64,000 bases of DNA. It comes from Convolutriloba macropyga. Lineage: Eukaryota. The position numbers were made by a program, and so were the translations under genes. The DNA lies in assembly GCF_964194025.1 (NCBI RefSeq), contig NC_134475.1, positions 11,408,001 through 11,472,000 of the forward strand. Reading direction: 5' to 3'. Shown piece by piece: positions 4,784 to 64,000 of the stretch. Under the pieces are notes generated by a model. That model made no database searches. It was not told the origin of the DNA and saw nothing but the letters and a program-made list of their open reading frames with translations. Positions within the stretch are counted from its first letter, which is position 1, and the number at the start of each line of letters is the position of its first letter.

Positions 4784-4811
4784 AGGGGTTCTGAATCACA
4801 GGACAACTGCT

Positions 4812-8324: not shown

Positions 8325-8888
8325 AATATAATTTCGTTATTGTCAAAGAGACAGTTTCCTGCTGTTATTGGTGATAGATTAGTTTTTAAATTCGGTGGAA
8401 GTTTGTTAAAATAGTTTTGTTGCTCGGAGAGAGCAATGGGAAAATTAATAGATTCATTGATCTATAAACAAACTTGAAACTCGCAGAAGTCGATGAACCA
8501 ACAATCATGAGGAAAAAGGTTGATAGTGTGCACAATTTCGGCTTGAAAATCATGGTTGGAATCGAGAAAGATCGTCAACCGAGTTACTAAGAGGCTTCGA
8601 AAAAGATACGGAATTCAGATTGAGGGTTTGGCAGTCTTTGCTTATTCGTTCTTCAAACGCTGGAATTTTTTGCCGAAAAGTTTTTTGACAAGACTTGCTT
8701 CGACACTACCTCTGTTGATTGCTTAATTTCCTTTTTCAAGTTTTTGAGCATAATTGCAAATAAAGATTTTTCACTCCAAAGTAATGATTGATCCTTTGGT
8801 ACTTGCTTTTTTATTATTCAAAAATCTTAATGGTCTTTGATAATTAATGACAAATCAAATAATTTTGGCTTTTCGCATTTGTCCGAAA

Positions 8889-9088
8889 NNNNNNNNNNNN
8901 NNNNNNNNNNNNNNNNNNNNNNNNNNNNNNNNNNNNNNNNNNNNNNNNNNNNNNNNNNNNNNNNNNNNNNNNNNNNNNNNNNNNNNNNNNNNNNNNNNNN
9001 NNNNNNNNNNNNNNNNNNNNNNNNNNNNNNNNNNNNNNNNNNNNNNNNNNNNNNNNNNNNNNNNNNNNNNNNNNNNNNNNNNNNNNNN
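8889..9088. other. Assembly gap (N run)
   Basis: 200 N. Confidence 1.
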
Positions 9089-9102
9089 ATTCAAAATAAT
9101 AC

Positions 9103-9891: not shown

Positions 9892-10458
9892 TTTGTTACC
9901 ATGGAAAATCACTGAAAGACCAAAACAAGCCATCAAAATTAATTCTCTTTGATTAAATGGAACACAGCAGAACATAGGGCTGCAGAGCATGACAAAACCA
10001 AAAGAAAATCTTCATAGATCGAATTCGATACCACTAGGAACAGAAGAAACATCCCACGATGTTTTTGAAGCAGAAAATATTCTCGAGATACAGCTTATAA
10101 TGGCAATTAATTCTTAAATCACCTTTATATTGGACATCTATGCTTGCAAATCAATAGTACTTAAGTTTTCTGATTTCCATCATACCGTCTGATCTCAAAA
10201 AAACTAAATTGAGCAATGTCCCTCGCCAACACGGAGTGAAACAACGAAGTAGATCTATCACGGGGACATTTGAAAATTATTTTCTAAGCATTGTTTTGGT
10301 ACATTAAAAATCAGCTCAAGAACAGATGCACTAGTTGAACCAAAAATCAACAGTTAGTATGAATTTGTTAAATGTATTACGATATTTATTATGATAGGAG
10401 GACATTTTTTACTTGCAAGAAGCTTTTACTCCGCGTTCGAGATGAATAAATTAAAAAA

Positions 10459-10618
10459 CGGATCTATTCCGTTTGTACCCCCAGCTCAGTGGGCGCATAT
10501 TATTTGCACCCCCAGACTCAAGTGTCATATTTTTACATGATGATTTATTACGCAATGACATGTGCTTTGTAACTGGGGGCTCATAACGTACTGGGGGGAC
10601 ACAAACGGAAAAGATCCG
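10459..10618. mobile_element. 160-bp MITE-like element with ~26-bp imperfect terminal inverted repeats, embedded in a larger dispersed repeat
   Basis: cggatctattccgtttgtacccccag ... ctggggggacacaaacggaaaagatccg. Copies at ~13439-13598, inverted at ~26758-26920 and partial at ~24900. Confidence 0.65.
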
Positions 10619-11038
10619 AAAAAACTGGCAACTGTCAAGCGCCGTACATTTGATTAGCTATTTGTTTATGTTTGTTTTAATATCGATACCTAAACTTTAG
10701 GGTTTCATGTACACATATGCCAAGGCATTGTTGTTTGTTCTCATTAAAGGTAAAAAAGAAAAAGTAGTTAAGTAGATAAAAAACATTTGCATTCATTGTC
10801 AAGCACGTTTAAAATAAACTAAACAGGTAAAGTAATTTACTGGTACAGCCTTGGTGGTCCCCGGTTATAAAAGCTGTTGCTGCCAGCTTCTTTGCGAAAC
10901 TCAGCCCTGAGTTTTTTTAGATACAGCACCGCTCGTATAATTTCCGATTACTAGCCCGAGTCTTTCCCATTATATCCCCCCCCCCCCAAAATATAGCCCC
11001 CCATTACGGTATAATTACCGTGATTAGGGGGCTATAGG

Positions 11039-27227: not shown

Positions 27228-29300
27228 GTAGTAGTAGTTGTTCTAAAAGAGTCAATTTCAAAACAAGATATCATTTAATCCAGGCATCAAGAGAAACTAA
27301 GAGCGACAATTTTTTCAAAAAAATTTTAATGTAAGAGATATCAAAGTTAAAATGAGTAGATTTTGCAACTAGAAAGAAATGTACTTTAGTACGAAATATG
27401 CCCAGCGGCATATTGATCTGAATAACGTTCAACTTCAGCAGTTCCTTTGCACATCTGGTGGCCCCGACTAAAAAAATTACCTTCAGAGCAAATCTTCTGC
27501 GTTTTAGGCACGCTATACAGTTTAGGAGTCAATGACTTCGTGTTGTAAAAACTCTTTTGTACTTCACCTCGGCTTGTTCATTGATCGTTTTCCCAAGCAG
27601 CACCATGTCCAAACTTATCTACTTGTAGCAAACTGGAAAGAAAGTCTCTGAAGTCCAGAGACATAATTGCGATCAGAAATAATCCATCTGAAAACTCTTG
27701 CTTGAAATTCATCTAGCTTGCGCATATACGTTACTGAAGTTTGCCATGCAGAACAAGTAAAGAAGGACGGACAGAACGAGGCTTGGATAGAGTAAAAGTT
27801 TTCTCTTTGCTGAGATCGTGAAATGCACGTTTCGCTTGATGAAAAATATTTTTTGCATTTAGTTAGTTTTGTATCAGTATGACGCTGCCAGCTCAAATTA
27901 CTCAATATGATGAACCCAAAGTCTTCAATGAAGTCAATGTAATCTTGTGCTGTCTCACCAAGTTTTAGCACTTGCGATGAAACGTAAATTTTTACATTTA
28001 GACGGATGAAAACGGAGTGCAATTTAAAATTGACGACAGATGTAAGGCAATAAAGTCTTGTTGTATAAGTTGTGAATTGCCACATGTGTAAATTTTTAAA
28101 TCATCAGCGTAAAGAAAATAAGATAAATGTAAGATTACAATTGGCATATCATTGATAAATAACAGAAAAAGAAGTGGTCCTAGGACACTGCCTTGTGGTA
28201 CACCAGATGTCACATTCCAGAAAAGAGAGAAAGTGTCATTCACTTTAACGCACTGTAAGCGATCAGAAAGATAAGACTCAAAAATTACCATAAAACCAGA
28301 ACATAAGCCAAGAACTTGAAGATCAGACAGCAGTAGGTGATGAGGCACATTATCAAAGGCCTTCCTGTTGTCAAAATAAACAGAAAGTGCAGGAGAGCTA
28401 TTGTCTTGATATTTATAAACATTATCTAAGTAATCAATCATTTGAGTTACGGTTCTCCGCAGTTTCACGAATCCGTGTTGCTGTTTGCAAACGAAAAACT
28501 TCACCTTTGGATAAAGAAAATCGAACAAAATACGTTCGAATACCAATGAATGTTTACATAAAATATCTATTGGACGACAGTTTTCAACCATGTCAAGTGG
28601 TACCGTTTTGTGTAAGGGCGCAATATACGATATATTCCGTAAAAAAGGCCAAGTGCATTTTTTGTAACCCAATAAAAGAGTTTTTGAACGGCTGGAGATA
28701 AAATAGCCGCACACTCACAAGGAACGAATGAGGGAATATTATCAGCTCTCATGCAGCTAGAATCATCAAAGCGCAATATTAAGTTTCTTATATCTCTTTC
28801 TGAAAATGTTATGTTGTCTATACACAACTCTGGCAAACATTCATAAGAGCCTGGCAAATCGTATTTAAATTTGGGACAAAAAACGGAACCAAAGAAAGTA
28901 TTGAAACCATTTGCGATCTCAGAAGACAGAGACACTCCGCTATAAGACATAACAGAATAAAAGACTTACTAAAGCCAAGCGTTCGCAGCAGCCTAAAAAG
29001 GTTAGAGGAGAATGAAAGAATGAACTTTGCAAAAACAATTTGCTTGTCCAATTCAGTAGACTCATTAAAAGATTTATTAAGTTCTCTTTGTTTTAGCGAG
29101 AGCGAAAGTGTCCAGTTTTTTGTAAGCTTACGGAGGTTAGCCTCTTCTTGATTCAAGAGATGCATTGTTTGCGAGGAGAAAAATATTGGCGCATTACGTC
29201 GCTTAGCTCTTTTCATTTTAAGGTTGCCGAACGGTTTTTGAGAATCTACATTTTCAACAAACTGGGGCCTACTTTAATCTACTGAAAGATTTTAATGGTT
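27228..29300 (-). mobile_element. Third CR1-group LINE, degenerate ORF2
   Basis: ENCRPIDIL, QHGF, DNRKAFD, TSGVPQGSVLGPLLFLLFIND and LYADDLKIY motifs; (TAC)n tail near 27228. Confidence 0.88.
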
Positions 29301-35604: not shown

Positions 35605-38600
35605 TGTGATGTTTTTGATTAAAACATGTGAAGTTATGAAACCAGAGTTTAAATGTGCTAAGTGTCAAATGCCTAAGTTCCCCCTATAAAATCAAAAATT
35701 CCCCAGTCTGAGTCGAGCAAGTTTCAAAGGTCCTTTTTTGACCCTAGGATACGCCAGAAATGTTTATGCTCTCCGGTCTAAGTCTTGCATACCAAGACAA
35801 CTTTTCATTAATATTTTTATTTCTGAAAGTCGCAACCATAGTAGCAAATCAAGCTCTATAAGTACATCATAATTCGCGCCATTGGCACACAAGTTATGGC
35901 TAAAAACGGGAAATCCCTTACTATAAATAATATTGAAAGTGAATGTCAACCACTTCTGACTTCTTCAATAAAATCAACCTAAATAAATAGCTTCAAATAG
36001 CTGGAAATAGGTTGGGGGAGTGGAAATCAGGAAATGAATGGGTTTTGGAGGACGAAAGTGTAGGTGGGGGGAGGAAAATGAGGGTGTGGGGGGAGATAAA
36101 ATATAAAGGAACTTGGTTTCTTTACACTCCCGGCACAAAAAAGGCAACATTTGAAATGAAAATGTAAACAATAAAACAAAGCACAAAATTTTTTTTTTGA
36201 TATTGAGTTTTTTTAATTTGTTTGTGTGTGTGTGTGTTTCTATGAACTTGTTTTTGTGACCCTCCCGCGCACTTGACAATTGCGGGAATACACGGCTTAG
36301 GGTTACTGCTGGTCTCTGTACCATTTCTGTAGACGTCTGGATGTCGAAGCTCCTGGCTATTCCGACTGAAGCTCTGTGTGCTTTCGCAATCCTCCCGAGA
36401 GGCCAGATGCCTCTGAGTGTAAAGTCCTTGAGCACCCACACAATATCACCTTCATCCAGTTGTTCATCATTTGATCTTTGCCACTTCGTTCTCTTGTTCA
36501 GCTCAGGAATATATTCCTTCAGCAACCTGCTCCAGTAGTGATCAAGTAGTGTCTGCGTCAACTTGAAATCCTTAGTGGAGAACCGCTGGCTGCTGTTCAC
36601 AAGAGGTTTCAAACACATGTAAGGTCTGCGAAGGAGGAAGTGATTCGGAGTGAGTGGTCCCTCATCTGAGATGCTGCAGCTCACATGAGTTAATGGTCTG
36701 GAGTTCAAAATTGCCTCGGCCTCTGCCACAACTGTCTGGAAAACTGAGAGTGTTAGTTTCCGACTGCCCAGCACTATTAGCAGACTCCTCTTCGCGGTCT
36801 GTATCAGCCTCTCCCAGATTCCTCCAAAGTGTGGTGCCAATGGAGTGTTGAATGTTCTGTTGAGCCAATTGCAGTCTGATGTACTCGTTGTCTGGCTTGT
36901 AGCTTCTCTGGAACTTAAACCTCATTGCTGATGTACTCGTTGTCTGGCTTGTAGCTTCTCTGGAACTTAAACCTCATTGCTTGTTTGGCTCCAATGAAGT
37001 TTTTGCCATTGTCACTCACAATGAGGTCGGGGTATCCACGTCGTGATACAAATCTGCGGATGGTCATGAGAAGACAATCGGTTGAGAGGTCATGGCACAT
37101 TTCTAGGTGGACAGCTCTTGTGACCAGGCATGTGAACAAGCAAACGTAGTGCATCTGCGTGCCCTCTCTCTTTTCCTAAATGTAGAATGGTCCAAACATG
37201 TCCATTCCTGTGTTGACGAAGGGATACTGCTTGTTCGCATCTGGAAATCTGAATTCAGGAAGATCGGCCATCTTCGGTCTCACATTGTCTGCCCTCCATC
37301 GTCTGCAAATGAAACAGTATTTCCCGATACTTCTCAGCGCCTTTCTCAACCCAATCATCAGGAAAATCTGTTGCAGGTGAGCCTTCACATATTCCACGCC
37401 CTGATGGCCACAGTCATGGGGCGCCTTTTCAATCAACAGTCTTGCAATTTTGCTCCTGCTATGGAGAGCAAGAGGATTTTTTGCACTGTAGGTTAGAGGT
37501 GCCCTGTCGAGTCTTCCTCCTAACCTCAAGAGTCCGTCGTCATCTAGAAAGGGAGTGAAGGGCATCAGCTTGTCTCCTTTCTCAAGATTGTCTCCCTTTA
37601 ACAGTGCAAAAGTTGTTCCTGAGAACAGCTCGTTTTCGGACATTTTAATGAGGTAGTTCCTTGCCCTTTTCTCATCTGATGCAAAACTGTCATTGTTGGA
37701 GGTCTCAGGTGATTCATTTTGTCTTCTAGTTCGGACTTTTGCTTTGAAGCGTCCTATTGCCTGGAACACCATTCTAGTAGAGTTGAGTAGTCGGCTCCAT
37801 GTTGAAAATTTTTCAACCTCAACGACTGGCGTCTGAAGTGGTGTCGCTTGTGTAGCGCATATGTGGGGATCACTGTCTTCGGCAAAAATCCAGGAGTCTT
37901 GAGGTGTGCTTAGAAAGTCCGGTGGTTGAAGCCACAGCTTTTGCATGTCTGATGGGTTGAGGCCTCGTGTGCCGTGGTCAGTGGGATTCATCTTTCCAGG
38001 GATGTGTCTCCAATTGTCCGGGTTGGATTTCTGATGAATTTAGTCAATCTGTTGGCAATATACATCTTCTGTCTCTGCTTGGATTGGATCCATCCAAGTG
38101 TAGCGGTGCTGACTGTCCAAGAGTGTTTTGAACTTATGGTTAATGTCATCTCGCTCTCACAAAATCCAGCTAGCTTTGCTCCAAGTGTCGCCGCTTCCAA
38201 TTCCAGTTTTGGAATGCTCAGCTGCTTGATCGGCGCCACTTTTGTTTTACTGATCACATATCGGGATGTGGAAGATCCATCAACTTTAGTTGTCCTCACA
38301 TAAACTATGGCAGCAATTGCACTCATTGAGGCGTCAGTGAACGTGTGAAGTTGATGGGTTCCATTGGTGCTGGGAATCAAGCATCTAGGAATTTCGATTG
38401 AAGTCATGCTGTCGAACTCATCCATCCAATCCTGTAGTTCCTGTTGGTAGCATTCCGACACAGGTTGATCCCAGTTTCTTCCCTCTTTAATGATTCTTTG
38501 GAGAATGCATCTAATTCTGATGGCAAAAGGTGAAATCAGTCCGACTGGATCGAACAGAGAAGCTGCCATTGAAAGCACCTTTCTTTGAGTCATCTGGTGT

Positions 38601-41600
38601 CCTGTGTAGAGAAGCTTCGGTTTTGCAAACATCAACTTGTCAGTTTTGGGGTCCCATGTCTGACCAAAGATTCTTTGGGCTTTCATTTCCGCCTTGTCTT
38701 CTTCCAGTAGGTTACTTAATGCGTCTGGTCTGTTGCTCAGGAACTTTGTCAGATTGAATCCTCCTGTATGCACAACAGTTTTGATCTCATCTACACTTCT
38801 GCTGGCCTCTTCTTCAGAAGGGGAGGTCTGCATGAAATCATCCATGTAGAACTGCTGCATTATTGATGTGTAGGCCTCTGGATGTTCTTGTTGGTGGTCA
38901 TTTGCACACTTCTGCAGAACAGAAATCGCTTAAGAAGGTGAGCATGTAGCTCCAAAAATGAGTCGATTGTATTTGAAGATCTTTTCCTTGCCATTCTGTG
39001 TCCACAGAAAACGGAGATAGTCCTGGTCTTGTGGTTGGATGCCAATCTGCATGAACATTGCCTCAATGTCAGCTGTGATTGCCATTGAGTACTGTCTGAA
39101 GCGGAGAAGAAGGCCATGCAGGTTGCAGAGTAGATGCGGCCCTTTCAGCAGTGCATCATTGAGTGAGGTACCCTCATATTTGGAAGCAGTATTTGTGACT
39201 CTGCGGATTTTATCTGGTTTCTGTTTGTTGATCACTGGGTGATGGTGAAGGTAACAGACAGAGTGTCTGCAACTGGGGTCTGCAGTTTAGATGTAGTTTT
39301 TGTCCAAATCTTTTTTGATGGTTTCGTCGTAGCGTTCTCTCAAATTTGTGTCCCTCTCCAGTCTTTGCTGCAGAGCGTGCCACTGAACTTTGGCCATGAA
39401 GTAGTTGTTAGGAAGTTTGATGTCTTTCTTCCATGGAAGTCCAATCTGGTATCTGTCACCAATGTGTTTTATGGTATCATTGAGGATGAACAGAGCTTCT
39501 TTGTCATCTGCAGACTGTCCCTTTGAAGAACACTGGTTGAAGTTCACACCTTCAATTGTCCAGAAAAGTTGGAGAAGATCTTCATCTGGTTCGTCTTGTC
39601 GTCTCCTGATATGATTGAAAAGTGTTATGCTTGTGCTGTTTGAATGTCCGACCCCCTTCTATGTGTACCTCTGAGGAATGGGTCCTGTCAGTGTCCAGCC
39701 AAGCAGAGTGTTGACTCCGTATGGGGTGCCAGTGGGTCCTGTTGTGAACTGTCTGGAAACCGTTGCTGTGAAAGCATCTGCTCCAATCAAAATTCCGATC
39801 CGGTTGTCTCTGATTGTTGGAAATCTTATGTTCTGGAGGTGAGAGTGGTCTCTGCAGATCTCATTCAGCATTTCAATTTGAACTCTTGGCATTCGAAACT
39901 TCTCCACTGTTGTTGCGTACACAGGGATCTGATCACAGGACAACTGCTTCACAAAGCTCCTATGCCGATCATTACATCTGCTGTTTTAACTGAGTGTTCA
40001 CCGTGAAGTGAAGCTAGGTGTAGGGTTATGTCTTTCGGTTGTTGAACTTGAAGTGCTTCAGCAACCTTCTGTGTTATTTGAGTGTTGTCATTGCCACTGT
40101 CCAACAAAGCGTAGGTTTCAATGCAAAGATCTCTGTTGAAAAGTGTTACTGGTATCGCCTGCAATTGTATCTGCGGTCTGATCCATGAAGTTTCCTGTTG
40201 GTTGCTGCAAGTGTAATTTTGTTGCGGAGTAGTTGCCTGCTGTTGGGCTATAGTGCGTTTATTGTTACTCTACTGTCTGTTGACGTTGTTCTGCGCGTTC
40301 ATCGGCTGAGGATGAAAACCGATTTTGTTCCAGTTGCCCCTGTGTGAAGTGCTGCTGTTAGATGCACTTTGCCTGTTCTGGTTTCCACTCTGTTGGTTGT
40401 AGTTTGAACTCAACTGCTGCCTTTGGTTTTCATTATTAAAGTTACGTCCATAGCTTGACTGGTTTTGGTTTGTTTGGTTTCTGAAGACATTGTTTTGTGA
40501 GTTTTGATTCCAGTGACCAATTGGTTGTACATTTTGTTACTGTTGCCTTGCATCTGTCCTATGGAGCGTTGAGTGATGAAAGCCATCGCATCTGTCCACA
40601 AGGCACCTTGTTTTCGATTGGCAGAGACCCTTTTCGTGAGCTCTTAGACAGTTAGGGCAGAGATTGAACCTCCTCACACAACCCTGTCGGTCAAACACTG
40701 AGTTTTCCAAGTATTCGGGACAACGACCAAGGTTGTGGTTTTGTGAGCAGAGTTGACATGAAACATCTGAAGGCCCCCTTCTAGAAAAAGTGTTTACTCT
40801 GGTTCTTTGGTTCCGTTGTGGGGAGATGTCTGCGCACGCCTCTGCGTATGAGTCAATCCAATCGGCAAAGTGGGTAAGGTTAGGTGGCAGCAATCCTTGG
40901 CTTCTTGTGTGCTGATTCCATCTGATTATCATATTAGGGTTCAGTTTGTCTCTGGCCATTCTCAAGACAGCTGAAGACTTCAAATCAGCTTCAAAGATGT
41001 GAAGCCTGAATGCTTGTACCAGTCGCCTCAAGAAAGATGAAAAGCTCACAAAAGTGTTTGGTTCGTCCTGTCTGGTTTTCGCCCTTCTCTCCAATTGATC
41101 CAGGTATGCAGCGACAATGTGCTGTGGTTTGCCAAACTTTCTGGTCAGTTCAGCGATGGCTGCATTGTAGTAGTCCTCATTGTAGGAGTATCCACTTATG
41201 GAATCTCTTGCTTTATGTGTTACAGAGTTTTGGAGGAATGTCATTTTTTGGGCGTCTGAGAGGCGACTGTTGTTGTGAATGGTTGCTTTGAAGAAGCTGA
41301 ACCACTGGTGTCAATCCAGAGTATCGCCTGGGAAATTATCAATTGATATCCTGGGCAAACTCAATGTGTTCTGTATCATCAGTGCTTGGTGTTGCATCCA
41401 GTCTGGTGGGAATCTCGGAAAGCCATTGTATAGGTTGTTGTTATAGCCGTTGTTATTGAGTCCATCAGGTCCACTGAAATTGTTCACTGGTAGTTGATTG
41501 GTTTGCGGTGTGTACCTATGGCTCATGGTCGGAGCAGCCTGGTTATTGTTGTGAAAAGAACATGGTTGTTGCAAATGACATGCTTTGCTGTCCTCACTCT

Positions 41601-43461
41601 CATGTCGGCTCTGTCCTTGAACATTGTTCTCTTCTCTCGATCGTTCATCCGTTCTCAGTTCCCCTGTGAAAATTTCGCGGTTTCTTCTTCTCTCTTCAAT
41701 GTTCAGAACGGGTTGAGAATTATCAGGGTCTTCTGAGTCGGACGAGTCAGCGTTGTTACTTTCCTGATTGTTGCGGCTTGCGAAATGATGTTTCATTGCT
41801 CTATTGCGTAAAGGGTACTTTCTCAATAGATTAGGGGAAGGCGCTGCTGATGTGTTAAAAGCAGATTCAGTGTCCCTTGCATCTGTTCTGTGTGCTTTTG
41901 CTCTCTGTTTGCATTTCAGCATGGTTATGTTTCTTTCGGCAGATTCATTGGCAAATGTTGTCAACTCTTCACTTGTCAGCTGTAGCTTCATGAGTTCATT
42001 GCAACTTCTGTCTAACTGCTCTTTTTGAGACCTCAAGAGTTCCAAAGTTTCACGTAGTAGGCTTAGACCTTCGTTACTATTACTTTGTTCTTCGAAGAGG
42101 TCTTTTACTGCGTTCGACTCTATCACTTTCAACTGAAGTTGTTGCTTTAGGCTGTTCTTTGCTGCTGATGATGCTTTGGACTTGTCTGGCATATTGATTG
42201 TTTTAGAAGTTTATTCTTATTTTACAAAGTTTATACTGCACTGTTACTGCACTATGTTTCCTTGTAACAGCCCTGTTCTATCTTTTGTTATGTCAAAACC
42301 TAATGTTAAATGTTAATTTAAATGAGGCTGTTGCTTAGTGTGCTTAGCTAATGTTTTTTTGCCTAATGTTTGTTAGCTATGTTTTAGCGTGTCGCAATCA
42401 CTAATCAGTGAAGTTTGATGAAGCTTCGTTAATAAGTTGTATAGAGTAAAACCTTTTCACTAATCAGTGAAATTCTTACAAACGTAGACAATTATAATTT
42501 TTTGTCCGGTTGCCTATTTGTTTTTCGAGCGCGATAGAAAGAACCCTAACCTGTGGCTAAATTTCGACTAAGGTGTGTGTCTACTGACACTGGTGGGGGG
42601 ATAACTTCACGTTCCTTTAAACCTTAATGAAGCAAGGGCATACCAGGCCTTGCAACTAATCCTAAGTTAATGTGTGTGTGTTAGTGGTGCTTTCAAATTT
42701 CACCTAGAGGAGGACCTACTCCTTTCAGAACTAATGCGGAAAGATACTATATTGATGCAACGATATCTAGACGCCTATTAAAATCCAACTTTCGAAATGA
42801 AGACTTTCAATTCTGCAAGTAAGGCTAGCCCATCTGTCGTGACTAGGCATCCCACGCAAGCATCCTTCTCAGGAGAACTGTCAAATCAGTCTTCACTTCT
42901 AGAGCCAGATTAAAAATCAGTTGGATCTTTTGTGGTTGTGATATTTTTGATTAAAACATGTGAAGTTATCAAACCAGAGTTTAAAAGTGCTAAGTGTCAA
43001 ATGCCTAAGTTCCCCCTATAAAATCAAAAGTTCCCCAGTCTGAGTCGAGCAAGTTTCAAAGGTCCTTTTTTGACCCTAGGATACGCCAGAAATGTTTATG
43101 CTCTTCGGCCTAAGTCTTGCATACCAAGACCACTTTTCATTAATATTTGTATTTCTGAAAGTCGCAACCATGGTAGCAAATCAAGCTCTATAAGTACATC
43201 ATAATTCGCGCCATTGGCACACAAGTTGTGGTTAAAAACGGGAAATCCCTTACTATAAATAATATTGAAAGTGAATGTCAACCACTTCTGACTTCTTCAA
43301 TAAAATCAACTTGAATAAATAGCTTCAAATAGCTGGAAATAGGTTGGGGGAGTGGAAATCAGGAAATGAATGGGGGAAATTTGGAGGACGAAAGTGTAGG
43401 TGGGGGGAGGAAAATGAGGGTGTGGGGGAGATAAAATATAAAGGAACTTGGTTCCTTTACA
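35605..43461 (-). mobile_element. BEL/Pao LTR retrotransposon copy 2 (defective)
   Basis: LTRs at 35605-36126 and 42937-43461. gag is split (41311-42192, 40537-41244); protease ALLDSG; RT YMDD; RNase H FTDAS; integrase core CLVTRAVHLE...VSDNGKNF is retained; 51-bp internal tandem duplication at ~36876-36978. Confidence 0.95.
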
Positions 43462-48367: not shown

Positions 48368-49473
48368 TTTTACTTGATTGACATGTGAATAGATCTTAGT
48401 TCCGAATCCCGGAGGTGATTTTCTATTTTCATCAACATTTCATGAGAATCATATATGGCTTGGGTAAAATCGAGTTCATTAGTTGGAGGTCGGTGGATGT
48501 TAGAATCAGGTTTCTGTTGGTGGGAGAATTTACTTCTGACATATGATTGATAGGTCAATAAGATAATGATAGCGCCAAAACAAAATTAGAATTGAGTTTA
48601 GTTTTGTGGCCATTACTTATCGACATTGCATCAAAGTTCGTCAGGTAAGTTCTTCTTTTGTTCTTTGGAACTTTAATAAAGAAAACTTCTAAGTTTTTTA
48701 TTTTTCTTTGAAACCATCACAAATTTGCTTGTATCTTGCGTGTGAAATTGGCTTTGATCATAGACTATGATGCTCTCGAAACGCTGCCGCTGATCAGACC
48801 ACAGCTGTGATCGCAGATCAGACAAACTTCAGACCATTGTTCAGACTTCAGTGCAGTCGAAGACTTTCCCACATCATGCAATCCAACCGCACAAAGATTG
48901 TCTGATCAGTGGTTACTTCCGTCTGGACACTGTGATTTGCGAGCGCATATAACGTAGTCAATCTGCGCGGTTCATAAAGGAATTCAATGAAGAAATTCAT
49001 AAGGAAACCTGAATCGTAACTATACCCTATCTAACTTACCTTGCCAAGCAACTATAATAAACATATCGGCTTGCACAAATTGATTTATCTTAAGAATTCT
49101 ATATTTATAAAATTTTAGTTGCAAAATAATTTGCTGATCTAATACTGGTCATTTCCTGGAAATATTGTATAATCCCTATTCGGCAAATAAATGGTATTAA
49201 ATAGATCATGCTCGGCCCATGAAAAGACTGTTGATCGGCTTTAACTGGGATATGGTGTACATGTATATGCTACGCGTGCATTTATAGTCAATACTGACGC
49301 CCCTATTAGACCTGTAAAGTTTTTTTAATTATTCGAAGATTAGATGGACGAAAATTTAACAAAATTATATAACTCCTGAATACATCGCTATCAAAAATAA
49401 TTGGGCAAAAATAATCGCAATCATTTATGAATACTTCAAATGACGTCACTAGTCTCTCTCGCATTGTTCCAAC

Positions 49474-49716
49474 TCAATGCATCAGTTTTCGCGCGTAAAC
49501 CAAAGCCACCCGACAAAAAAAGTGGGCAAGTTGGAAAACTATTAACACACTCCAGCCGAGCCAGAGACCCAAACTGCCTCCGAAGTCGCTCAAAAGAGAC
49601 GAGATGTCGTAGGCTGGTGTCTCCCATATCCTCTCAAATGTGATGTGTTCGTAAAAGACTTCAACTCGGGCAAAGTTGCGCCTTATTTTCTGAATGATAT
49701 TCTCATTTGTCAAGTT
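49474..49716 (-). CDS. DEG/ENaC channel exon encoding pre-TM2 and TM2 (probably the last coding exon)
   Basis: NFARVEVFYEHITFERIWETPAYDISSLLSDFGGSLGLWLGWSVLIVFQL is the DEG/ENaC TM2 signature. Acceptor aaacag at 49717-49718, phase 0. Confidence 0.92.
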   Translation of the reverse strand, partial: NLTNENIIQKIRRNFARVEVFYEHITFERIWETPAYDISSLLSDFGGSLGLWLGWSVLIVFQLAHFFCRVALVYARKLMH

Positions 49717-49899
49717 CTGTTTAATTTAGGGAAATTTCACCACCTAATGTTGACATATTAGAACAAACTAGAGCAAAACTGAAGTGTGCGTGAAGTGCGT
49801 TAAAAACGGCGAAGTCTTTCCAATTCATAATAAAATTAAGTTTCGATCTTTCATTTTTTCGTAGTAACATTTTTAATAAAACTGTCCAAAGCAATGCTC

Positions 49900-50600
49900 T
49901 CTAATTTTAATAGAGATAAAATATTAGAATCTGCTACAAATTTTTCTTACTGACTTCTTCTTATGTCGATGTCTCTTCCTACATAAAGTTTACCAAAAAT
50001 TCCTCAGAATTTTAAATATACGACTCAATAATATCAAAGAGATGGTGTATAAGTGCTTTCGCGCATATAGTTCAAACTTTTCACGTAAATGGATACTCAG
50101 ATAAACAGAAAATAGCCATCATCAAAACTCAAGCATCAATATGAAAAATGCATATTCAAAAAGCACTAACTGTTTTTTAATAAAAGTCAGGAACAGCGAG
50201 TAAAAAACAGCAAGGACTGCAGTTCGCAAAACTAAGACAATTAATATGAAAAAACTTCTAAATCAGTTCTGTCAAAGCCATTAAATTTAAAAGGTAGGGG
50301 TTATTGACGACGAGGAACTGACTAAAGCTGTGTTTCAATAGAAAACTCGTTGATAAATATTGACAAACAAATCAACCGAAAAAAACGGACACCACTTAAA
50401 GTCTATTCATTTCTGATAATAGGCGATGTCAACGAGATCAAAATCGGTACCTGCCAACAAAAGTGAAACCTGCCAGGAAAAATGGCAAGAAAAGCTCTTT
50501 TATTTTCTGAATAACTGATGTCAAAGATCTTTATATTCACTAATTATATCCTAAAACCAACTATATTCAAAACACTGTACAAATTAATAAAAAAAAGATT
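49900..50600 (+). mobile_element. Possible very decayed Penelope-like remnant inside the DEG/ENaC intron
   Basis: Only short fragments resemble PLE C-terminal regions (NGYSDK, ILKPTI). There is no intact ORF. Confidence 0.25.
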
Positions 50601-52095
50601 GCACCATTTAATAACAGCAAGAAAAGACCTAGTATAAAAATCAGGTAATTCAATTTTCTCTAAAATAAAGTTTGCAGTCGTAAAAAAAATCAATAGTTGT
50701 GTGCTGATACTTTAAAGAAACTAAATCAATCAATACAACAACAAATTTGACATATTTGGATGCATTTATTAGAATATAAAAAAATATTAAAAATGTGTTT
50801 TTTGTGGTAACATGTAAAAATTTCCTTATATTGTAATTAAAATAATCTTTGTCGAAGTCATGAAAAAACAGCTTCTTCTGGCACTTATTATTATCAATCT
50901 TCAGGTTAAGCTCGCCAGAATTTACTCTAGAGCCTTGATAAATTTATTAAAAGAAAACAGAAATGAATGTGGAACCATGAGCAATTTTGTCAAGGTTCAT
51001 TTGGCGGTAATACATATGTGACGTTATTTGAAAGCAATGAATAGTCTATGCATTTTTATTGTTCGTTTAGTCAATTTTGAAAACATTTTGATTAAAAAAC
51101 GTTTTAAGAAAATTCTTAAATCCGCAGGCAAAATGAAAAAGAAAGAGAAATTTCTGTAAATTACTTTTTTACAATTTGTTTTAGTTTTTCTCAGCAGTTT
51201 GTGTGACGAGCTTCTCCATTCGTCTAAACATTTTTCTCAGCATTTTGCCCCTCAACTTTATGGTTCTTCAGTATATGCTTTCAAAATTAAATAGTTTTTA
51301 ATCCTCTTGGATGGTTCCACGCAAATGATGTAAAATTTATGATGAGCTGGATGAAAAAAAAACCTTGACTGAAAAAATAAATTTTTTTTTGCACTGGTCT
51401 TCCTGGAATAAACGTTTACTCATAAATTTTTGCAAAATAATTTACTCGCAAAAATAATCATTTCGTTTTTTTTAAACAATTGAATACTCAAATTGCTGGA
51501 GAGCCCATAAGAGTGTTACTTTTATTTATTTATTACTGTCATTAAAAGATTCTAGACCCACGATTCTAGGCCTTATAAAAGATATGTTACGTTATGATAT
51601 GTTGTTAATGGATAATAGCTCATAGTTTGACATAATTCAATATAAAATTCCAGTAAATCCAAAGCTGTTACAGCTGTTCACCGAAGATTCAAAATTATGA
51701 CTTCTTCCGTCTGAGCATAGGAACTGCTGTGATATTGTCATATAAATACATAGCGCATTTCGATGAAAAAGGAGTTGAGACAACCCAGGTCGAGGTCCCG
51801 GCCGAGGTAACCTCTGAAAGACTAGTGTGCGCTCGATACTCATTGTGCGCGCCTGATCAGACGAGTTCCAGACCGAAATGACCTCTGAACAGACAAGTAT
51901 CACAAGTATTGTCCAGACTAGGATCGAAGCTTTTTCCAGGCCATGTAATTGGAGCGCACTGTGAACATGTGGGCGCTCGAAGATTTCCCAATCAGAGGTC
52001 ACTTCGGTCTGGGCACCTTGAAGTGGGTAGGATTTGGAACTAATTTTCACTCTGCATGAAAATGAAAATTGAAAGTAGATAATGGTGAAAATTCC

Positions 52096-52467
52096 CTTAG
52101 CCGTCAAGACACTCTTCAAATAAGACTGAACCTTAGTCGATTTAGATCGCTCAAGCAATCTGTTCACGACAAATGGCGCGTAAGTCTCACCCGGCCACTC
52201 AGTCAAAGATTGTTGCGTCGTGAACATAACTGACGTGCATGGGTGCGGGCACGGACAGTCCAAGAGCCCGTTTTGAGACTTGAACTCGACGTTTATTCTA
52301 CAGTTGCGCTGAATTGGGTCAAAATTGTCGCAGAATCTGAGAGAGGCGTTGTTGATGGAGGAATCGGTGCTGTAGAACTGGTCATAGCTGTCTATACATC
52401 CGCATGTTCTGGCCAGATCGTTCAATCGGCAGAAATAGAGGCAATCTTCTCTGTTGTAAACTGGGCT
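52096..52467 (-). CDS. DEG/ENaC channel exon, Cys-rich thumb domain
   Basis: YNREDCLYFC...TCGC...FC...NC...DCPCPHPC...SLTEWP. Acceptor ttttttgtcag at 52468. The donor position is inferred (see findings). Confidence 0.88.
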
Positions 52468-52911
52468 CTGACAAAAAAGGCAAAAGGGCACATCTTTTCT
52501 GCTAATTTTACAATTAGTTGAATTATTGGGCGCTGTCTTTTTGAAGATTTGTCACACATTTTTGAAGTCAAACTTTGGTGGTTATTTTAGTCACACTGGA
52601 GAGCAAAAAAACGAGTAATTTAAGGCGTGAAATTTTTTAGCTTCATTTCTATAGCAGAGATGGAATACTGTTTGAAATAATATTCTGGTTTTAATAGAGA
52701 TTTTTGTACCAGATGCGGCATTTTAACTACTTCTCCGTTTTTTTTAAAAAAAAATTTGATCAGGTTTTGATTTGTATGGCTTCCAAAGTCCATTCCTGGT
52801 AATTTTAAAGTTTTTTTTGGTTTAATAACTGAAAATTCTTTAAGTTGTATGTCGCTGGGATTTCTATACCCCGATCTCTTTACCTTTGGCAACAGAAAAG
52901 ATGTCCCTTGC

Positions 52912-53114
52912 CTTGGCTATGGCCGCACGGTTCAAATGCAAGCCTTGTGGCCATTCAGTTGTACAGTTGCCATATTTGCCTCCTTTTCGGACAATTTCCT
53001 TCTTCTGCAATGCCATAAATGCGGCAGAGCCAGGGCTCACTGGCGAACCTTTCGTGAACATATCTGGATAGATTGATGGAAAATGTTTGGCCACAATGGC
53101 CGCTGGAAACGAAG
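52912..53114 (-). CDS. DEG/ENaC channel exon, palm/beta-ball
   Basis: AAIVAKHFPSIYPDMFTKGSPVSPGSAAFMALQKKEIVRKGGKYGNCT resembles ENaC GARVMVH...[30 protein letters not shown]. Acceptor tttacag at 53115. Confidence 0.85.
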
Positions 53115-53879
53115 CTGTAAATTGGATCACGAACTGCTTCTTTTCAACTGAAGCGAGCATTTCAGTTTGATCTTTACTTTTCAAGTTCGTAAGGTTACGT
53201 AACTATGTTACGTAACTTTACGTACATAGGTTACGTAACTCTGATGAAGTTACTGAAGAAATGTGGCATTAGTCGAGAACCGCGTAGCCTTAAGAGATAT
53301 TAGTCAGAATTTCGGAGTGATTTTAGCGAAGATCTTGCTTAAAACACGAACTTTGCTGGTTTTAAAATCTCGCACTGTAAGTAAGAGAATTTGACAATCC
53401 TGAATTGATCACTGCATCTTGATCTGGTATTTTGAAGTGTGCATTGTCATATTTCAAATCCTATTACTAAATTTCTGTAAAAATATAGAAAACTTTGATT
53501 TATAAACACATGATTCAAGATCTTGCATTTCTTGAATTACTACCTAAATTTTTATTTCTATGGGCTATCGTTAAGGCAAAATGCAAATTTCTTTCAAAAA
53601 TAGGACGCTTGCAAGTTATTTTCAAATTTTGCGACAAATGGCTGTTGCATATTTTGCAAATAAATATATTATGCATTAAATAGATCGCCTTGGTGAAAAA
53701 TAAATGGCAAATGTTTCATCAAAAAATTCCACTAGGGGAATTTATGGTTCAAAGATTTAGAAAGCCAAAATTAGAATACATTGCTTAGGCTGAAAAAAAT
53801 AATCGAATAATTTTTATATTTAAAAAACCTGTTTTTCAGATTGTTCAAGGTTATGGTGCAAATTGAAAAGAAGCAATTC

Positions 53880-54524
53880 CTGTCATTCCAATGTACTCGT
53901 CAACGTCCAAAAACAGGGTTAGTTTCAACCCATAATTCACCCCCGGTTTCTTGGCAATTCTACTCTGGAACGGCTCTATCCAGCTCTGATCAGAGTTAAA
54001 ACTAAAACAGTTGCCAAACACCGGGTCCTGAAACTGGAAAAAGTCAGTATGGTCACAGTTCTTCCCATTGTATGAGCACTGGGCGATAAAGTCCTGACCT
54101 TGGGTTCCATAAGCTTCAATGACATTCAGGTCAAATCTCAAATATTCGCGAAGATCCGATAAATCGTTCAAACTTGACGTGTTGTATAGTTGATAGTAAT
54201 TTAGAGAATCGATAATAAGATCGTTCTGCAAGACTTGATTGATTTCAGTGGTCAGTTTTTCAAGTAGGAAACTCGAATTGCACCCAAAAACTAAATCTTC
54301 GTCAAAACCCAAATCGCATTCGGTCACGCCGTTGCAAGGTAGAGCACAGGTTTGTTGACCAGGACAGGTGATAGCTGGCCAGATACAGTTGCCCTGGATT
54401 GTGGTTATGTTTTCATTCCTTTTCAGGTTGATTTCGGTGCAATTTAAGGTCGGATGGGTTTCGTCGCTTTTGTCGTCACAGTTGAATTGTGAATCACATA
54501 CCCAGTCATACGGAATGCACAATT
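53880..54524 (-). CDS. DEG/ENaC channel exon with two LDL-receptor class A modules followed by the conserved extracellular core; no upstream exons recognised within the window
   Basis: CIPYDWVCDSQFNCDDKSDE and CALPCNGVTECDLGFDE (LDLa); FIAQCSYNGKNC, FGNCFSFN and GVNYGLKLTLFLDVDEY (DEG/ENaC). Acceptor gttttag at 54525, phase 1. Confidence 0.9.
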
Positions 54525-55599
54525 CTAAAACATAAATGGTTTCTTCAAGCAACTGGCGATGAGGTCAACGACCCAAGAAAAGCGAGACAGGGGGGTTTGG
54601 GGCTTGGGTCGCTGACAGGGGGGTTCGGGGCTATTATGAGCTCATCTAGTCTGGACAAAATTTTAGTCGCGTTGCTCCGCCTGGCCGTTTGTTCCAATTA
54701 CCCAACTGATTTTTCTAATCTTTTAATTTTTAAAAAATTGTTCCCTTTTTTATATGGCCAATTTTTTGTCAGATATTTTCTTGTCTATCCACTTTTCAAG
54801 AGATTTTTCAACGTTTTCCATATTTTTCTCTCGCTAAATTGTAGTCCCTCAGAATTTCAAGTTGCTAAACTGAAGAGGCGGCAGTTTAGCTCTAAAATTG
54901 TGATAGAGTGAGCCAAAAATTATTTCATTCTCCGATTTAAATCTTATAGTATTGCAAAATTAGCAAATGGAGCAGGAAACAACACGGAGCCAACCATTGC
55001 TGGGTAAGGAAACAAAGTTTGCCTCCGTAGAAGATTTTGAGGTGATACATTGGTACCTACTTCGCTGTACTTAAAACGAGATAGTCCTCAAAAAGCTAAA
55101 ATTATATTGACATAAAATGCATTGACGGAGATTTACCAGTATATGCCATCTTTGTATTTCAATTAGATAGCGCACAAAAGATTTTATAGTCACCAGAAAT
55201 GCTGCAATTGTATCTCTATAGAAAACGCTGCTGATGGATGAAAGAAACATTTGTACATTTTAATTGAATGGCGTTGTCAGAATCGTTGAAAGACAGAATC
55301 GGATATAACCATTTCAAAAAAATTCCATGAAGTTTTACAGGCAGCGAGCTTCAAAACGATACCCCAAAAAATTAATGTGGAATATTGATAATTCAATGAA
55401 CAATTGAAAATTTGCGGAAAAATTACAGTTAGCATACAAATTCACATTATATTTCTAATGTGGGAACAAAACATCATGTGAACACACTATATTATTCCCA
55501 TTCCTCATTGTGCTAAAAATGCTTTAACCGAAACACTGCGCTTTTAAACGGCGAAAACCTTTCTCCTCTAAATAATACATACGCAGATTGATTGAAAAC

Positions 55600-57636
55600 A
55601 TACTTTCAAAAATAATGCTTATAACTTCAACATTCTTTTTTTGTTTGCAATTGACAACAAAAATGGAGAACAATGAGTACACAACGTCCAGTGCAATATC
55701 AGTGGCTTAAGTAACCACAAACCAACACAAACACTTGAACAATTTACAAGGAGGTTGAAGCTCTTAGAGAAAATATAAAGAGCAAGATATTGATTCACAC
55801 AAATCACAAAAATATTAACGACAGAGAACGAGCACAAGAAAGATACACCCGAAAAAATGGTGAGCTTGTGGTAAATCACCCACTTAACGCCCGCACCAGC
55901 AAAGTTGTTACAAATTATCAAATGAAACTTTTAAAAAATTTTTGGTAATGAAGTTTCCTAGAGATAGCATAAAAGCCTGTTACATTCTACTGGATACTGA
56001 AACCGAGTTCCAACTTCCCACGTTATTATGCAGAATCAATAATTTCGACAGATTGGAAATATTTAAAAAGAAGAGTGCCACGAAAAGTGAAAAAACATAT
56101 TAACGGCACCAATGCCTGAAGTAGAGTTGGCATTCAAAGAAAAGGCTTCAATCGAAACACTATTGTCTGTTGTGACTTCAATGTAAACTTTTTTTCAAAA
56201 AGCATAAAAATATGAGCAACTAGCATCCGTCTTGCAAACAAATCGATTGACAGTGGTTGCGTCCGATACGGTCACTCGGGAGACGAAAACAACACAAATA
56301 TTACGTAATTTGTTTTCACAAATTTCCGTTCGCCACACAGGAATAAGAAAATGCTGTGAGTTATTCTCTTTTTTGAATTGAAGATGCCGGAAGAAAATGC
56401 AGGCGATATAAGCAAAGAATCCTGCAGCTCTTGTATATGGTCGAAACTGCGTAACACGCGAGTCATTGAAAAGATATGACCAAGTGTTGAGTCCGAACTT
56501 GAATAAAATTAATGAGACGAAATAAACAGTAAAGATTGCAATTTGTTCTAGAAGAGTTACCTGAGTTGTTAAAAAGAGAACTGGCTCAAGTAGTGCTTGC
56601 AAAAAATTTTTAGTTAACCAACGAAAGAGTTGGGTTGACGACGCAGTTAAGAAAGCTGCTTCCAATAAAATTCATTTCAGACAGTCGTATCTCATAGAAA
56701 AATCTGATAGGAGCAAAAAGAGATGAGATGAGAAATCAAAGTTAGTCAAACAACTAGTAAGAACAATAATGAGACAATTTTATCAAAAAGATTTACAAAA
56801 AGACGCCAGCAGCCGTAATAGAAACTTTATTGAGGGCGTTAGAAAGCTGTCAATTGAGTAAAAAACAACACAACCGCGTCTTTCTGAGGCAAACTTGGAG
56901 ATTTTCATTAGTTTTTGTTTACCAAAATAGGCAACAAACTGGCAATCAACTTTGACATTGTCGCAACAAGCTCCTGCAAAAAAATTGTACACAGTATGTT
57001 TCTCAGTAAAACAAAACATTTGAAAAGAACAAAACTCTGAGCAAATTGAATATTAAACACACCGTTGATACTTGTAATATTAAGAACTAGTTTTTGAAAA
57101 GCCTTGCCCCCGCAATATCTCTTTTACTATGCAAATTTAAAAACAGATGCTTTGAGTTATGATACTATCTTATATGCTTTAAAAGAGAAAATAACACCAG
57201 TCTTCATAAATTCAGATAAAACTGAGCTTTCAAGGACAAAATCTATCTTAACACAAAATGGGAAAAACACCGAGAAAAAAATAAACAGCAGAATTGTATC
57301 TTTCGTGAACGACGAAGATGTCTTAACGAAAAATCAATTGGGGTTCAGAGACCAACGAAGCACAATTGATGCACTCGTAGAACTTGTTGAGAACTGAGAT
57401 CAAACTGGAAAAATACTCTGGGCACTACATGCACATTCCTTGACCTTAATAAAAATTTTGAGTGTTTTTAATAAAGAGTCAAAAGTTATTTTTTAAAAAA
57501 ATGCTTGATTTCCGGATTATCTGGGCCGCCCGTCCTAGAATTACTGACATCTTATCTCCAGAAAAAGCCATCAATGAACAATATCAGGTTTTGCATACCT
57601 TAGGGCTCGATCTTGGGACATTTTCTATTTGTTATT

Positions 57637-57679
<43 letters not shown>

Positions 57680-58450
57680 GATATTGGTTTTAGTACAATG
57701 TAAAATGGAACTATTTCATATGCACACGATACTGTAATATACATTAAAGAAGAACCGAAAACCGAAAGCGATGCGCACAAAAAACCACAAGATAGATCTG
57801 AAGTTTTGGCTAAAAAATGGTCTTGCAATGGATGCTGATAAAACAAAAGCAATTAGGTTTTTTAAAAAGAACAAAACTCATCCAATAAAAACTCTTAAGA
57901 TAAAGATCACGGAAGTACACAATGTTGCATTAAATAGATATTTTGCTATCCTACTTGAGAAAAATCTCGGTTGCGAACAACAAGCAGAGTGGAAAACAAT
58001 GAAAACTTCCTGTTGCTTGTTCTACCGATTGAGAATTTATTCAAGCAAAAGTCAGCTAGTAACAGTTTATTAAGAATATGTGCAGCTACTTGCTTAGTAT
58101 GGAGTTCTAATGTATGCAAGTTCAAAGGAAAAAACTCTCAAACCACTTCAAAAGGAAAATTAAATTTATATCAACACTTAGGAGAAAGCTACAGTTTTAC
58201 AAAGTATCAGAGCTACGCCTCTATGAAAACTTGAAAATAGCAACAGAAATATTGGGAGGAGCGAAAACCCAGTTTCTTGTCTAGAAAATTTAATTTTCCA
58301 AGAGAAGATTCTGACAAAAACGAATGGTCGAACAAGGTGTAGTAAACTTTCTGTACTCAAAAAGGAAAATAACAATTTTTCTATTTAGACGAAAAAATCA
58401 GTCAGAAGATAAAATGCTCATTAGTAAACATTCAAAACTTTGTACAAATT
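55600..58450 (+). mobile_element. Decayed L2/CR1-group LINE, antisense within the upstream DEG/ENaC intron
   Basis: KNQLGFRDQRSTIDALVELVE and WLKNGLAMDADKTKAI RT-region motifs; interrupted by (TA)n. Boundaries are approximate. Confidence 0.65.
57639..57676. repeat. (TA)n microsatellite
   Basis: Direct reading. Confidence 0.95.
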
Positions 58451-58958
58451 TTCCGAACATTCGCACCAAATCAAATCTTCAAGTTAATGATATTTGTCAT
58501 AAAATTCTTGATGACTACATCAAAGACAACGGTGAGTTACACTTTAAGTTTACTAGTTAGGAGACCAAACGTTGACATTAAAAATAAAATGAGTTTGTAT
58601 TTTTTGAGAGCGGTTTTTTTCCTGTTTTCCAAATCAGCATCTACCATAGTTTTTTGCCTTCCGCCTGAGACACTTCAAGATAGGCCGTCATGCCTAGTGC
58701 TCTCCTGGAGTGATTTTGATTTTGTCTGGATGTAAATATACATAATTTTGATATCTTTCTTGTTATCTCTGGAAACACTCTATTATTACTGTGGTTTTTG
58801 TTGTAGCAGTTTTTAATTGCCGCACACCACCCGCTGACCGTTTGAGTTCTATTGGAACGACTTCTATAGTATGTTTGTTTTTGTGTTTCGCTGTGGACGG
58901 AGAAACTGGAGATATAACGTAAATATTCGTTCTCGAACTCGCTTTTAATTTCAGGAAT

Positions 58959-58960
<2 letters not shown>

Positions 58961-59021
<61 letters not shown>

Positions 59022-59026
59022 TATAT
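58961..59026. repeat. (TA)n microsatellite
   Basis: Direct reading. Confidence 0.95.
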
Positions 59027-63100: not shown

Positions 63101-64000
63101 TCAAAGTCTTTTGATTCTATAAACCACAAAATACTGTTACGGAGACTTGAAAAAAAATAGGTTTTGACGAACACGCTACCAATTTAATAGAGAATTATTT
63201 GAGTGAAAGAACGCAGAGAGTTGTTCTGAATGGAATTAAATCAGATATTATCCATTCCTTTCAGTTGTTCTGAATGGAATGGATAAATTTGAAAAGAAGA
63301 GCTCCACAAGGTACTATTTTAGGACCTCTATTATTTAACATTTACGTCAACGGTTTAGCAAAGAATGTAGAAAAGGATTGCACGGTCGTACAGTACGCAG
63401 GCGACATTTTTCTTTTTACATCGGACACTGATGAAATATCGTCAAAAACAAAACTTGAACATAACATCTCAAAAATTATTGACTTTTTTGCTAAGTCCCA
63501 GTTAGTAGTGAACAAACAAAAAACAGAATATATTGTGTTCAGCACCAGGAAGAGGTTAACAAATACTGTTCTAAATGTCGAAAATGAAAGAATAGCAGAA
63601 TCCAATAGTGTGAAGTATCTTGCCGTAATTTTTGATAGCAAACTAAAATTTGATGGAGAAGTGAAAAAGATTCTTCAGAGAATGGCTTGTGGAAAAAAAG
63701 TTTCGAATACACTAAGTAAAAGTTTACCAGAGAAAACGAAAGTCTTATTATTTATTGCAATAGTAATAAGTCATCTACATTATTCCGCTCTAATTCTGAT
63801 ATAGTTGCAAAAGTCATTACTCACAACTTTAGAAAAACATCTGAATTGGGGAATAAAATCCATTTTTAATAGAAAATACGATCGGTCTACAGATCTCAAA
63901 CTTCGGAACAAAATACTACCAGTTTTTTTCTCTTGAAATACCATTGCTCAAAATATATTTTCTCGCTTACTCAGCAACGACCTTCCAGTATATAAAATTG
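60180..64000 (+). mobile_element. L2/CR1-group LINE with SGNH-esterase ORF1 and EN-RT ORF2, disrupted, running off the window
   Basis: ORF1: IGSSII, VILQDGTNA, DDIHFN. ORF2: LLKSSGIEINPG, HQNARSL, ETW, GGGI, GGDYNLN, TLIDYI, TDHF, QFGYRK, LDLSKSFDSINH, PQGTILGPLLF and YAGD. Confidence 0.9.

Follow-up and report, generated by a model that had tools for sequence, protein, structure and literature searches.

A Predicted GA-AG Intron with Inverted-Repeat Ends in a DEG/ENaC Gene of an Animal Genome

On the minus strand of the DNA analyzed here, a coding frame that is open from position 54552 reads ...GAG TAC ATT GGA ATG ACA G at 53880 and then runs into GGAATTGCTTC, where it encounters a stop codon 10 codons past the exon end, at 53851-53853, just as the initial annotation of this stretch had stated. 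The related coding sequence resumes at 53114, and the intervening 765 nt begin with GA, end with AG, and have two ends that are complementary to one another. This raises the question of whether the segment is an intron with a GA donor and, if it is, where its paired ends came from and what they do. Here, the term window refers to the whole 64-kb stretch of DNA that was analyzed, positions are counted from its first letter, and a slash within a motif marks a predicted splice boundary. The features of the locus are collected in Table 1.

Table 1. Predicted features of the DEG/ENaC gene and its introns, in order along the minus strand.
Feature	Position	Strand	Description	Evidence
Exon A, upstream coding	53880-54552	-	Ends ...ATGACAG; frame open from 54552, 5' boundary approximate	Pfam ASC PF00858, E = 1.6e-9, profile 119-216; PDB matches to ENaC and ASIC chains
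LDL-receptor class A module, extracellular domain	54457-54519	-		Pfam PF00057, E = 2.9e-6, 27.8 bits vs cut-off 24.1
Donor CAG/GA	53878-53882	-	Exon-end AG, then +1 G, +2 A, +3 A	Sequence
GA-AG intron (predicted)	53115-53879	-	765 nt, phase 1	Excision gives open 497-codon model, gapless vs intron-less paralogs
5' arm of terminal inverted repeat	53861-53879	-	Intron +1 to +19	Letters GAATTGCTTCTTTTCAATT
Nested multicopy repeat in intron	53207-53459	-	Intron about 421-673; outside arms	41 genomic matches, 71-84% identity
3' arm of terminal inverted repeat	53131-53149	-		Letters AGTTGAAAAGAAGCAGTTC
Unpaired 3' tail GTGATCCAATTTACAG	53115-53130	-	16 nt, acceptor at end; its AG is the first AG 3' of the helix
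Predicted spliced junction	53880/53114	-	ATGACAG/CTTCGTTTCC
Exon B, downstream coding	52912-53114	-		Pfam ASC profile 230-286; FaNaC match E = 1e-3
Intron W2, GC-AG (predicted)	52468-52911	-	Bulged end-to-end helix ~22 bp, -29.2 kcal/mol; interior 59-406 is an old multicopy repeat
Exon C, coding	52096-52467	-		Pfam ASC profile 292-397; gene model
Intron W3, GG-AG (predicted)	49717-52095	-	13-bp helix, one mismatch, -18.4 kcal/mol
Exon D, last coding	49474-49716	-	Second transmembrane segment and stop codon	Pfam ASC profile 398-454, E = 2.2e-15; gene model

When the letters of the two arms were re-read and folded, their coordinates and the 19 contiguous pairs described in the initial annotation, 17 Watson-Crick and 2 G-U, were recovered exactly. 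The stem was present in the minimum-free-energy fold of the entire 765-nt intron (z = -4.0). The end-to-end duplex had an energy of -27.9 kcal/mol, compared to -8.3 +/- 2.5 for shuffles, and none of the 380 cross-pairings between ends of different introns was as strong. Both of the non-Watson-Crick pairs are G-U on the sense strand. The stem had been said to start exactly at intron position +1; the contiguous RNA helix does so, whereas the repeat in the DNA takes in the last 3 nt of the exon (CAG / ..GTG), includes one mismatch, and was reported by a DNA-level repeat finder as 53128-53147 with 53863-53882 (20 nt, 90% complementary). Inverted repeats per se are common in the window, as its 64 kb yielded 160 pairs of 18 nt or longer, a count that includes many redundant pairs. 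That the ends of such repeats coincide with all three of the junctions required in one gene (described below), however, is not chance.

The donor context of the 765-nt intron is ACAG/GAATTG and its acceptor is TTTACAG/C, a YAG. Its 16-nt tail contains a URAY-like GTGAT and a short run of T, the tail of W2 is T-rich without an A, and no clear branch-site consensus was seen across the introns. The possibility of a U12-type intron was rejected, with a donor of /GAATTGCT against the required /RTATCCTT. Rfam covariance models run on both strands of 49400-54600 gave no match at E <= 1, whether to group I or group II introns, to bulge-helix-bulge motifs, or to any other family.

Joining 54552-53880, 53114-52912, 52467-52096, and 49716-49474 produced 497 open codons ending in a stop codon, and the three gaps in this model begin with GA, GC, and GG. 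Excision of the GA-AG segment was the only one that preserved the frame. The Pfam ASC profile runs on over the GA-AG junction, from 216 to 230. A gapless junction with alpha-ENaC, which the initial annotation had proposed, was also borne out: exon A residue 100, the split codon, and exon B residue 1 map to alpha-ENaC residues 262, 263, and 264, a continuous numbering in which the exon B alignment is weak (E = 1.7). A homolog search with the exon A protein returned no match in a database from which this animal group seems to be absent. In W2, the arms are not part of the nested repeat (59-406). A canonical-looking AAG/GTAAAG was noted 27 nt into W2 (52884-52911, minus strand, +1 to +28), with the frame open through it; this was rejected as the W2 donor, since no acceptor that would preserve the conserved protein downstream is in phase with it. 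The interior of W3 at 51800-52000 is a very high-copy repeat, with a summed word depth of ~6,500-10,900 in the three deeper of the DNA runs discussed below, compared to 28-60 in its flanks.

Among the 14 long window ORFs that were searched, the sole Pfam match not belonging to a transposon was the DEG/ENaC gene. Elsewhere in the window there are two copies of a BEL/Pao-type LTR retrotransposon, at 1916-7055 and 35974-42192 (minus strand), with matches to Peptidase_A17, RVT_1, DUF1759, and DUF5641, as well as LINE-like reverse-transcriptase/endonuclease fragments at 15567-16631, 27998-28714, and 63274-63804. A block of long inverted and direct repeats, nested within one another and with arms of 56-111 nt at 80-94% complementarity, occupies 23400-26400, and long (TA)n microsatellites lie at 57633-57685 and 58947-59025.

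Comparison with paralogs provided data on both the removal of the segment and its age. At least 55 loci in the 1.18-Gb genome matched the DEG/ENaC family, and tandem clusters were observed on contigs C10 (41.6-41.8 and 48.6-49.3 Mb), C1 (6.24-6.31 Mb), and C7 (59.2-59.6 Mb). Intron content was highly variable among these paralogs. The 497-codon model aligned without a gap at all three junctions with the intron-less paralogs L026, L033, and L044, and L045 spanned all three in a single HSP; one example of a junction alignment is LFLDVDEYIGMT/ASFPAAIV against LFLDISEYIGLLAPTAAV of an intron-less paralog. From this homology and the intact reading frame, we infer that the 765-nt segment is spliced as an intron. 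The predicted intron is a lineage-specific and recent gain, based on the comparison with its relatives. This is because 19 paralog loci match uninterrupted across the position, so that at least 19 paralogs lack an intron there. An LDL-receptor class A module was also found in the intron-less L026, L044, and L045, whose open frames of 753-874 aa have long extra N-terminal segments that align to the module region.

Pairs of paralogs with introns in common were informative about which parts of these introns are retained. L031 and L034 have three non-GT introns in common, and between them the exons had a dS of 0.20 and a dN of 0.019 (omega 0.09), the introns were 80-88% identical, and the intron ends, including the arms, were unchanged. 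The introns of L066 and L067 were 71% identical overall, with the first 19 and the last 20 nt identical. Judged from such sequence comparisons, the intron ends are shown to be constrained, with constraint on pairing and constraint on splice signals being inseparable by these comparisons. They also show that the genes carrying hairpin-ended introns are, by their substitution patterns, under purifying selection, and their introns are therefore likely removed from the mRNA. L034 (C4:79712633-79715926), with exons 94.5% identical to those of L031, has three in-frame stops and an exon end of CTAAG for CCAAG; it looks to have been recently disabled, with its intron arms still retained.

To describe end pairing across the family, a profile was built from intron-less paralogs and 48 paralog contigs were scanned with it, the catalogue loci being about 3.3 kb in length, with some merged (3-6 kb overall). 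For each adjacent pair of exon matches, the G...AG excision with the highest profile score was chosen blind to structure. Ambiguous cases and paralogous duplicates were left out, which gave 20 introns from one gene family with boundaries taken from homology. Duplex energies were calculated for the first 25 against the last 45 nt of each intron, and pairing was considered strong at -18.4 kcal/mol or stronger, the 1% quantile of the cross-pair null being -17.9. All five introns with GA or GG donors were strong, at -18.4 to -27.9 kcal/mol. Among the four with GC donors, two had energies of -19.4 and -29.2 and two of about -5 to -6. The 11 GT introns had none that were strong, with ten at -3.2 to -12.2 and one at -15.7. 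Overall, strong end pairing was present in 7/9 non-GT introns versus 0/11 GT introns (Fisher p = 4.6e-4, 20 introns).

Other properties of these introns were either more constant or less constant than their pairing. The exon ended in AG at all seven stem-bearing introns, compared to 6/11 GT introns, and the acceptor was the first AG past the helix in 8/8 helix-bearing introns (the same seven and L036, whose intron has a GT donor and a weaker helix). The geometry of the helix was loose: the repeat started anywhere from -3 to +5, and the tail was 2-16 nt in length. In five of six introns the sense duplex was more stable than the antisense duplex, and in one intron it was the opposite. Mismatches counted from RNAduplex comprised 14 G-U and 0 A-C, a measure that is biased, and an unbiased DNA alignment gave 2 G-U, 0 A-C, and 3 transversions. 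An ab initio scan for ORF-joining AG/G...AG pairs with anchored stems proved too noisy, as mirror-repeat controls were as frequent as real stems.

Two sets of sibling introns had features of transposon insertions. The GA-AG intron common to L066 and L067, both of which are on contig C8 (L066:2052-2297, minus strand), has an 11-bp terminal inverted repeat, GGATCTTTTCC, and the direct repeat CAGGAGC on both sides. Its donor, CAG/GAGC, and its acceptor, CAG/, are both within the duplicated target (7-8 bp). A free copy of the element was found in L089 (around 1474-1637), 164 bp in length, with the same inverted repeats and a perfect 8-bp target duplication, GGTTTTTA. A genome search returned at least 530 candidate copies of this family of ~164 bp elements. 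By its sequence, the L066/L067 intron is a hAT-like MITE in the predicted role of an intron. The GT-AG intron of L036 (1796-2237 in the minus orientation) has a 9-bp direct repeat, CAGGTCAAA, as well as an inverted repeat, and there too the duplicated target supplies both the donor (GT) and the acceptor.

For the 765-nt intron, a search of the 1.18-Gb genome with its first 480 nt returned only the match to itself, and the arms were unique too. The arm pattern had 169 matches in the genome versus 72 for the control, and an inverted partner was present near none of the nine near-matches that were fetched (0/9). Only the nested internal segment (421-673) was multicopy. The end of the exon and the end of the intron have only ACAG in common, and the 8-mers adjoining the arms differ. 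Two forms of target duplication were considered and rejected, a hAT-style 8-bp duplication beside the arms (1/8 matches) and a long duplication of the 12-16-nt tail against the exon end (8/16, 3/12, and 5/13 matches). The 3' arm sits 16 nt inside the intron, which makes the element asymmetric, unlike a classical MITE.

We hypothesize that the 765-nt segment is a real intron of insertion origin for which the helix is at most helpful, and we assign this reading a probability of roughly 0.6. Short inverted-repeat elements, likely MITE-like DNA transposons, would land in coding exons at MAG/R sites, and a spliceosome needing just AG/G at the donor would splice the inserted elements out, such that they would be tolerated. 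The 19-bp terminal stem would then represent the inverted-repeat ends of the inserted element, rather than a structure purpose-built for splicing. In the pre-mRNA the helix would juxtapose the donor and the acceptor, and it would mask the four AGs within the 3' arm, leaving the first exposed AG to be used. The GA-AG intron probably belongs to a class of recently gained introns that have AG/G followed by A, G, or C, an acceptor at the first AG after the helix, and inverted-repeat ends. Removal by the spliceosome is likely in view of three features: borders that are constantly AG/G...AG, tails rich in T, and an acceptor that is the first AG past the helix. A structure-specific nuclease was considered and is disfavored, as the geometry varies too much for one and there was no match in Rfam. 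A helping role for the helix is not self-evident, since pairing of U1 or U6 with the donor would first require a 19-bp helix from +1 to be melted.

Several other explanations were weighed against insertion followed by splicing. It is improbable, in our estimation, that the segment is not an intron, in which case a transposon-like insertion would have broken the gene, or would sit in a dying paralog, and would stay in the RNA. A family of at least 55 loci, some with stop codons, is what such an explanation would draw on, as is the fact that the precise removal of an insert and its target duplication always restores the frame, which makes an intact frame weak evidence when taken alone. However, the gene has three separate inserts bounded by AG/G...AG, with nested repeats that are 66-84% identical to their families and imply age, and yet its 497 codons are still open and its family motifs intact. 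Paralogs with like introns evolve at an omega of 0.09, and there is no clear target duplication to account for the exact restoration of the frame. Less likely still is the suggestion that splicing here is canonical, from GAC/GTTGAC to CAG/TTC, or that the GA is a sequencing error for GT. The former has in its favor an in-frame CAG/TTC within the 3' arm and a phase-0 GT that precedes the GA donor by 25 nt, but the splice would place its acceptor within the 19-bp helix and replace VDEYIGMT by the unrelated FVIQFT. The loss of the EY motif had been foreseen in the initial annotation, and EYIG is conserved in every paralog aligned and in the ENaC/ASIC alignment. The claim that no phase-1 GT lies nearby also stood, as every GT close to the end of the exon has phase 0 or 2 and none occurs between the exon end and the stop. 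With regard to an error in the DNA sequence, contigs from four whole-genome DNA runs (two samples, one study), which may include the data of the assembly itself, covered 51859-55399 at a word depth of 28-60 with no differing letter and all read GA, and so a GT>GA error was excluded. Those contigs contained no joint that skips the 765-nt intron, nor any intron-lacking form, and on account of this and the even depth, somatic removal at the DNA level was rejected.

It is possible, though we consider it doubtful, that the helix is a selected RNA element required for donors without GU, one that would replace U1 pairing by bringing the donor to the branch site and acceptor, with inverted-repeat insertions being merely one source of such helices. 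Put generally, and tentatively, a helix closing an intron from about +1 would license such donors, and any AG/G...(helix)...first-AG segment would be excised whatever the base at +2. The link between donor type and pairing (5/5 GA or GG introns and 0/11 GT introns) agrees with this, as does the fact that the arms differ between introns, those of the 765-nt intron being unique in the genome, and that they are conserved between paralogs whose introns have interiors that diverged by 12-29%. The sense G-U identity of both non-Watson-Crick pairs and the stronger sense duplex in 5/6 introns are of the kind expected from an RNA element; the sixth, however, is more stable in antisense, and the mismatches in the unbiased alignment are too few to argue for selection at the RNA level. 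The loose geometry also weighs against a required structure. The counts by donor type fit a helix requirement and, equally, youth alone, as fresh insertions would have both intact repeats and unimproved donors. In addition, a helix over +1 to +19 would normally hinder use of the donor; stems that cover a donor are known to hinder splicing, for example in tau exon 10 and SMN2. If the helix did define these introns, inverted-repeat transposons would be “born spliceable” in coding exons, the recognition of GA and GG donors in Eurytemora and Oikopleura would be explained, and intron recognition by the spliceosome would be structure-defined in a metazoan. How GA donors are recognized has been stated to be unknown (PMC5714493), which leaves room for such a mechanism.

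Considered as a spliced intron of insertion origin, the 765-nt segment has counterparts in several systems. Introns of the GA-AG and GG-AG types have been reported in a copepod, Eurytemora affinis, and a tunicate, Oikopleura dioica (Robertson 2017, PMC5714493; Frey and Pucker 2020, PMC7072748). GA and GG donors account for about a tenth of the introns in at least two animals, by a recognition mechanism that is unknown. The genome analyzed here is not the E. affinis assembly, as it lacks two 23-mers around verified donors of that species and its best match to an IR25a peptide is 64%. The GA donors of E. affinis verified by RNA-seq have the logo AG/GAA (PMC5714493), an exon-end AG is obligate for the verified GA and GG donors, and the donor of the 765-nt intron fits the logo of verified GA donors in both E. 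affinis and O. dioica (PMC5714493; PMC7072748). This donor, ACAG/GAATTG, agrees with the 36 verified donors in File S1 of that paper in its exon-end AG, +1 G, and +3 A. The resemblance to the introns of E. affinis and O. dioica also extends to the YAG acceptor, to excision being required by the frame, and to lineage-specific, recent positions. The difference is in the paired ends, which are not mentioned in PMC5714493 or PMC7072748, and Robertson noticed no sequence that accompanies GA and GG introns (PMC5714493).

Introns derived from MITEs have been described in another tunicate, Fritillaria borealis (Henriet et al. 2019, as excerpted in PMC11282704), with terminal inverted repeats, target duplications, and a permissive U2-type spliceosome; according to the same excerpt, canonical introns are at old positions and non-canonical introns at new ones. 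Fritillaria, like the species studied here, is an animal in which new introns have terminal inverted repeats. Its borders, as excerpted, are mostly AG-AC or AG-AT, whereas those in the DEG/ENaC introns are G[A/G/C]-AG throughout, and the 765-nt intron belongs to no recognizable repeat family. In the introners of Micromonas and Aureococcus (Huff et al. 2016, also as excerpted in PMC11282704), the transposon gives one splice site and the target duplication the other, which is exactly the scheme of the sibling introns in L066/L067 and L036. The introners in that excerpt have donors that are canonical (GT or GC) and fall into large and homogeneous families, in contrast to the 765-nt intron, which has no visible target duplication. 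Introners with canonical borders have also been reported in sea urchin and in a Styela tunicate.

Pairing between the two ends of a non-canonical intron has precedents outside the animals. The introner elements of Amoebophrya have inverted repeats of 8-20 nt between the intron ends, a predicted hairpin that joins the exon borders, and direct repeats of 3-5 nt at the borders (PMC7789003). Amoebophrya, however, is a dinoflagellate with highly variable borders, apparently no U1, and repeated families (PMC7789003), whereas here the host is an animal, the G...AG borders are constant, and the arms are unique. The non-conventional introns of euglenids also have non-canonical borders and a structure uniting the intron ends; their borders are variable, positions +4 to +6 pair with -8 to -6, they are non-spliceosomal and yield circles, and a transposon origin is suspected (PMC4770533; PMC11282704). 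An intron of the euglenid type was rejected here, as the borders are constantly G...AG and the helix starts at -3 to +5 and ends 2-16 nt before the 3' end. The constant AG/G...AG and the choice of the first AG past the helix as acceptor suggest the spliceosome rather than euglenid-type removal.

A literature search of limited coverage, which is not proof of novelty, found no description of hairpin-ended or paired-end G[A/G/C]-AG introns in animals. Introns that were born from transposons and end in inverted repeats have been described mainly in protists, as well as in a single tunicate whose borders are different, and the DEG/ENaC case combines non-GT G[A/G/C]-AG donors and transposon-like inverted-repeat ends in one animal genome. 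This combination raises two questions, namely whether exons can absorb transposons owing to relaxed donor recognition and whether the signal for splicing includes the hairpin. There is a practical consequence as well, in that genes of this type will be broken by gene predictors requiring a GT or GC donor.
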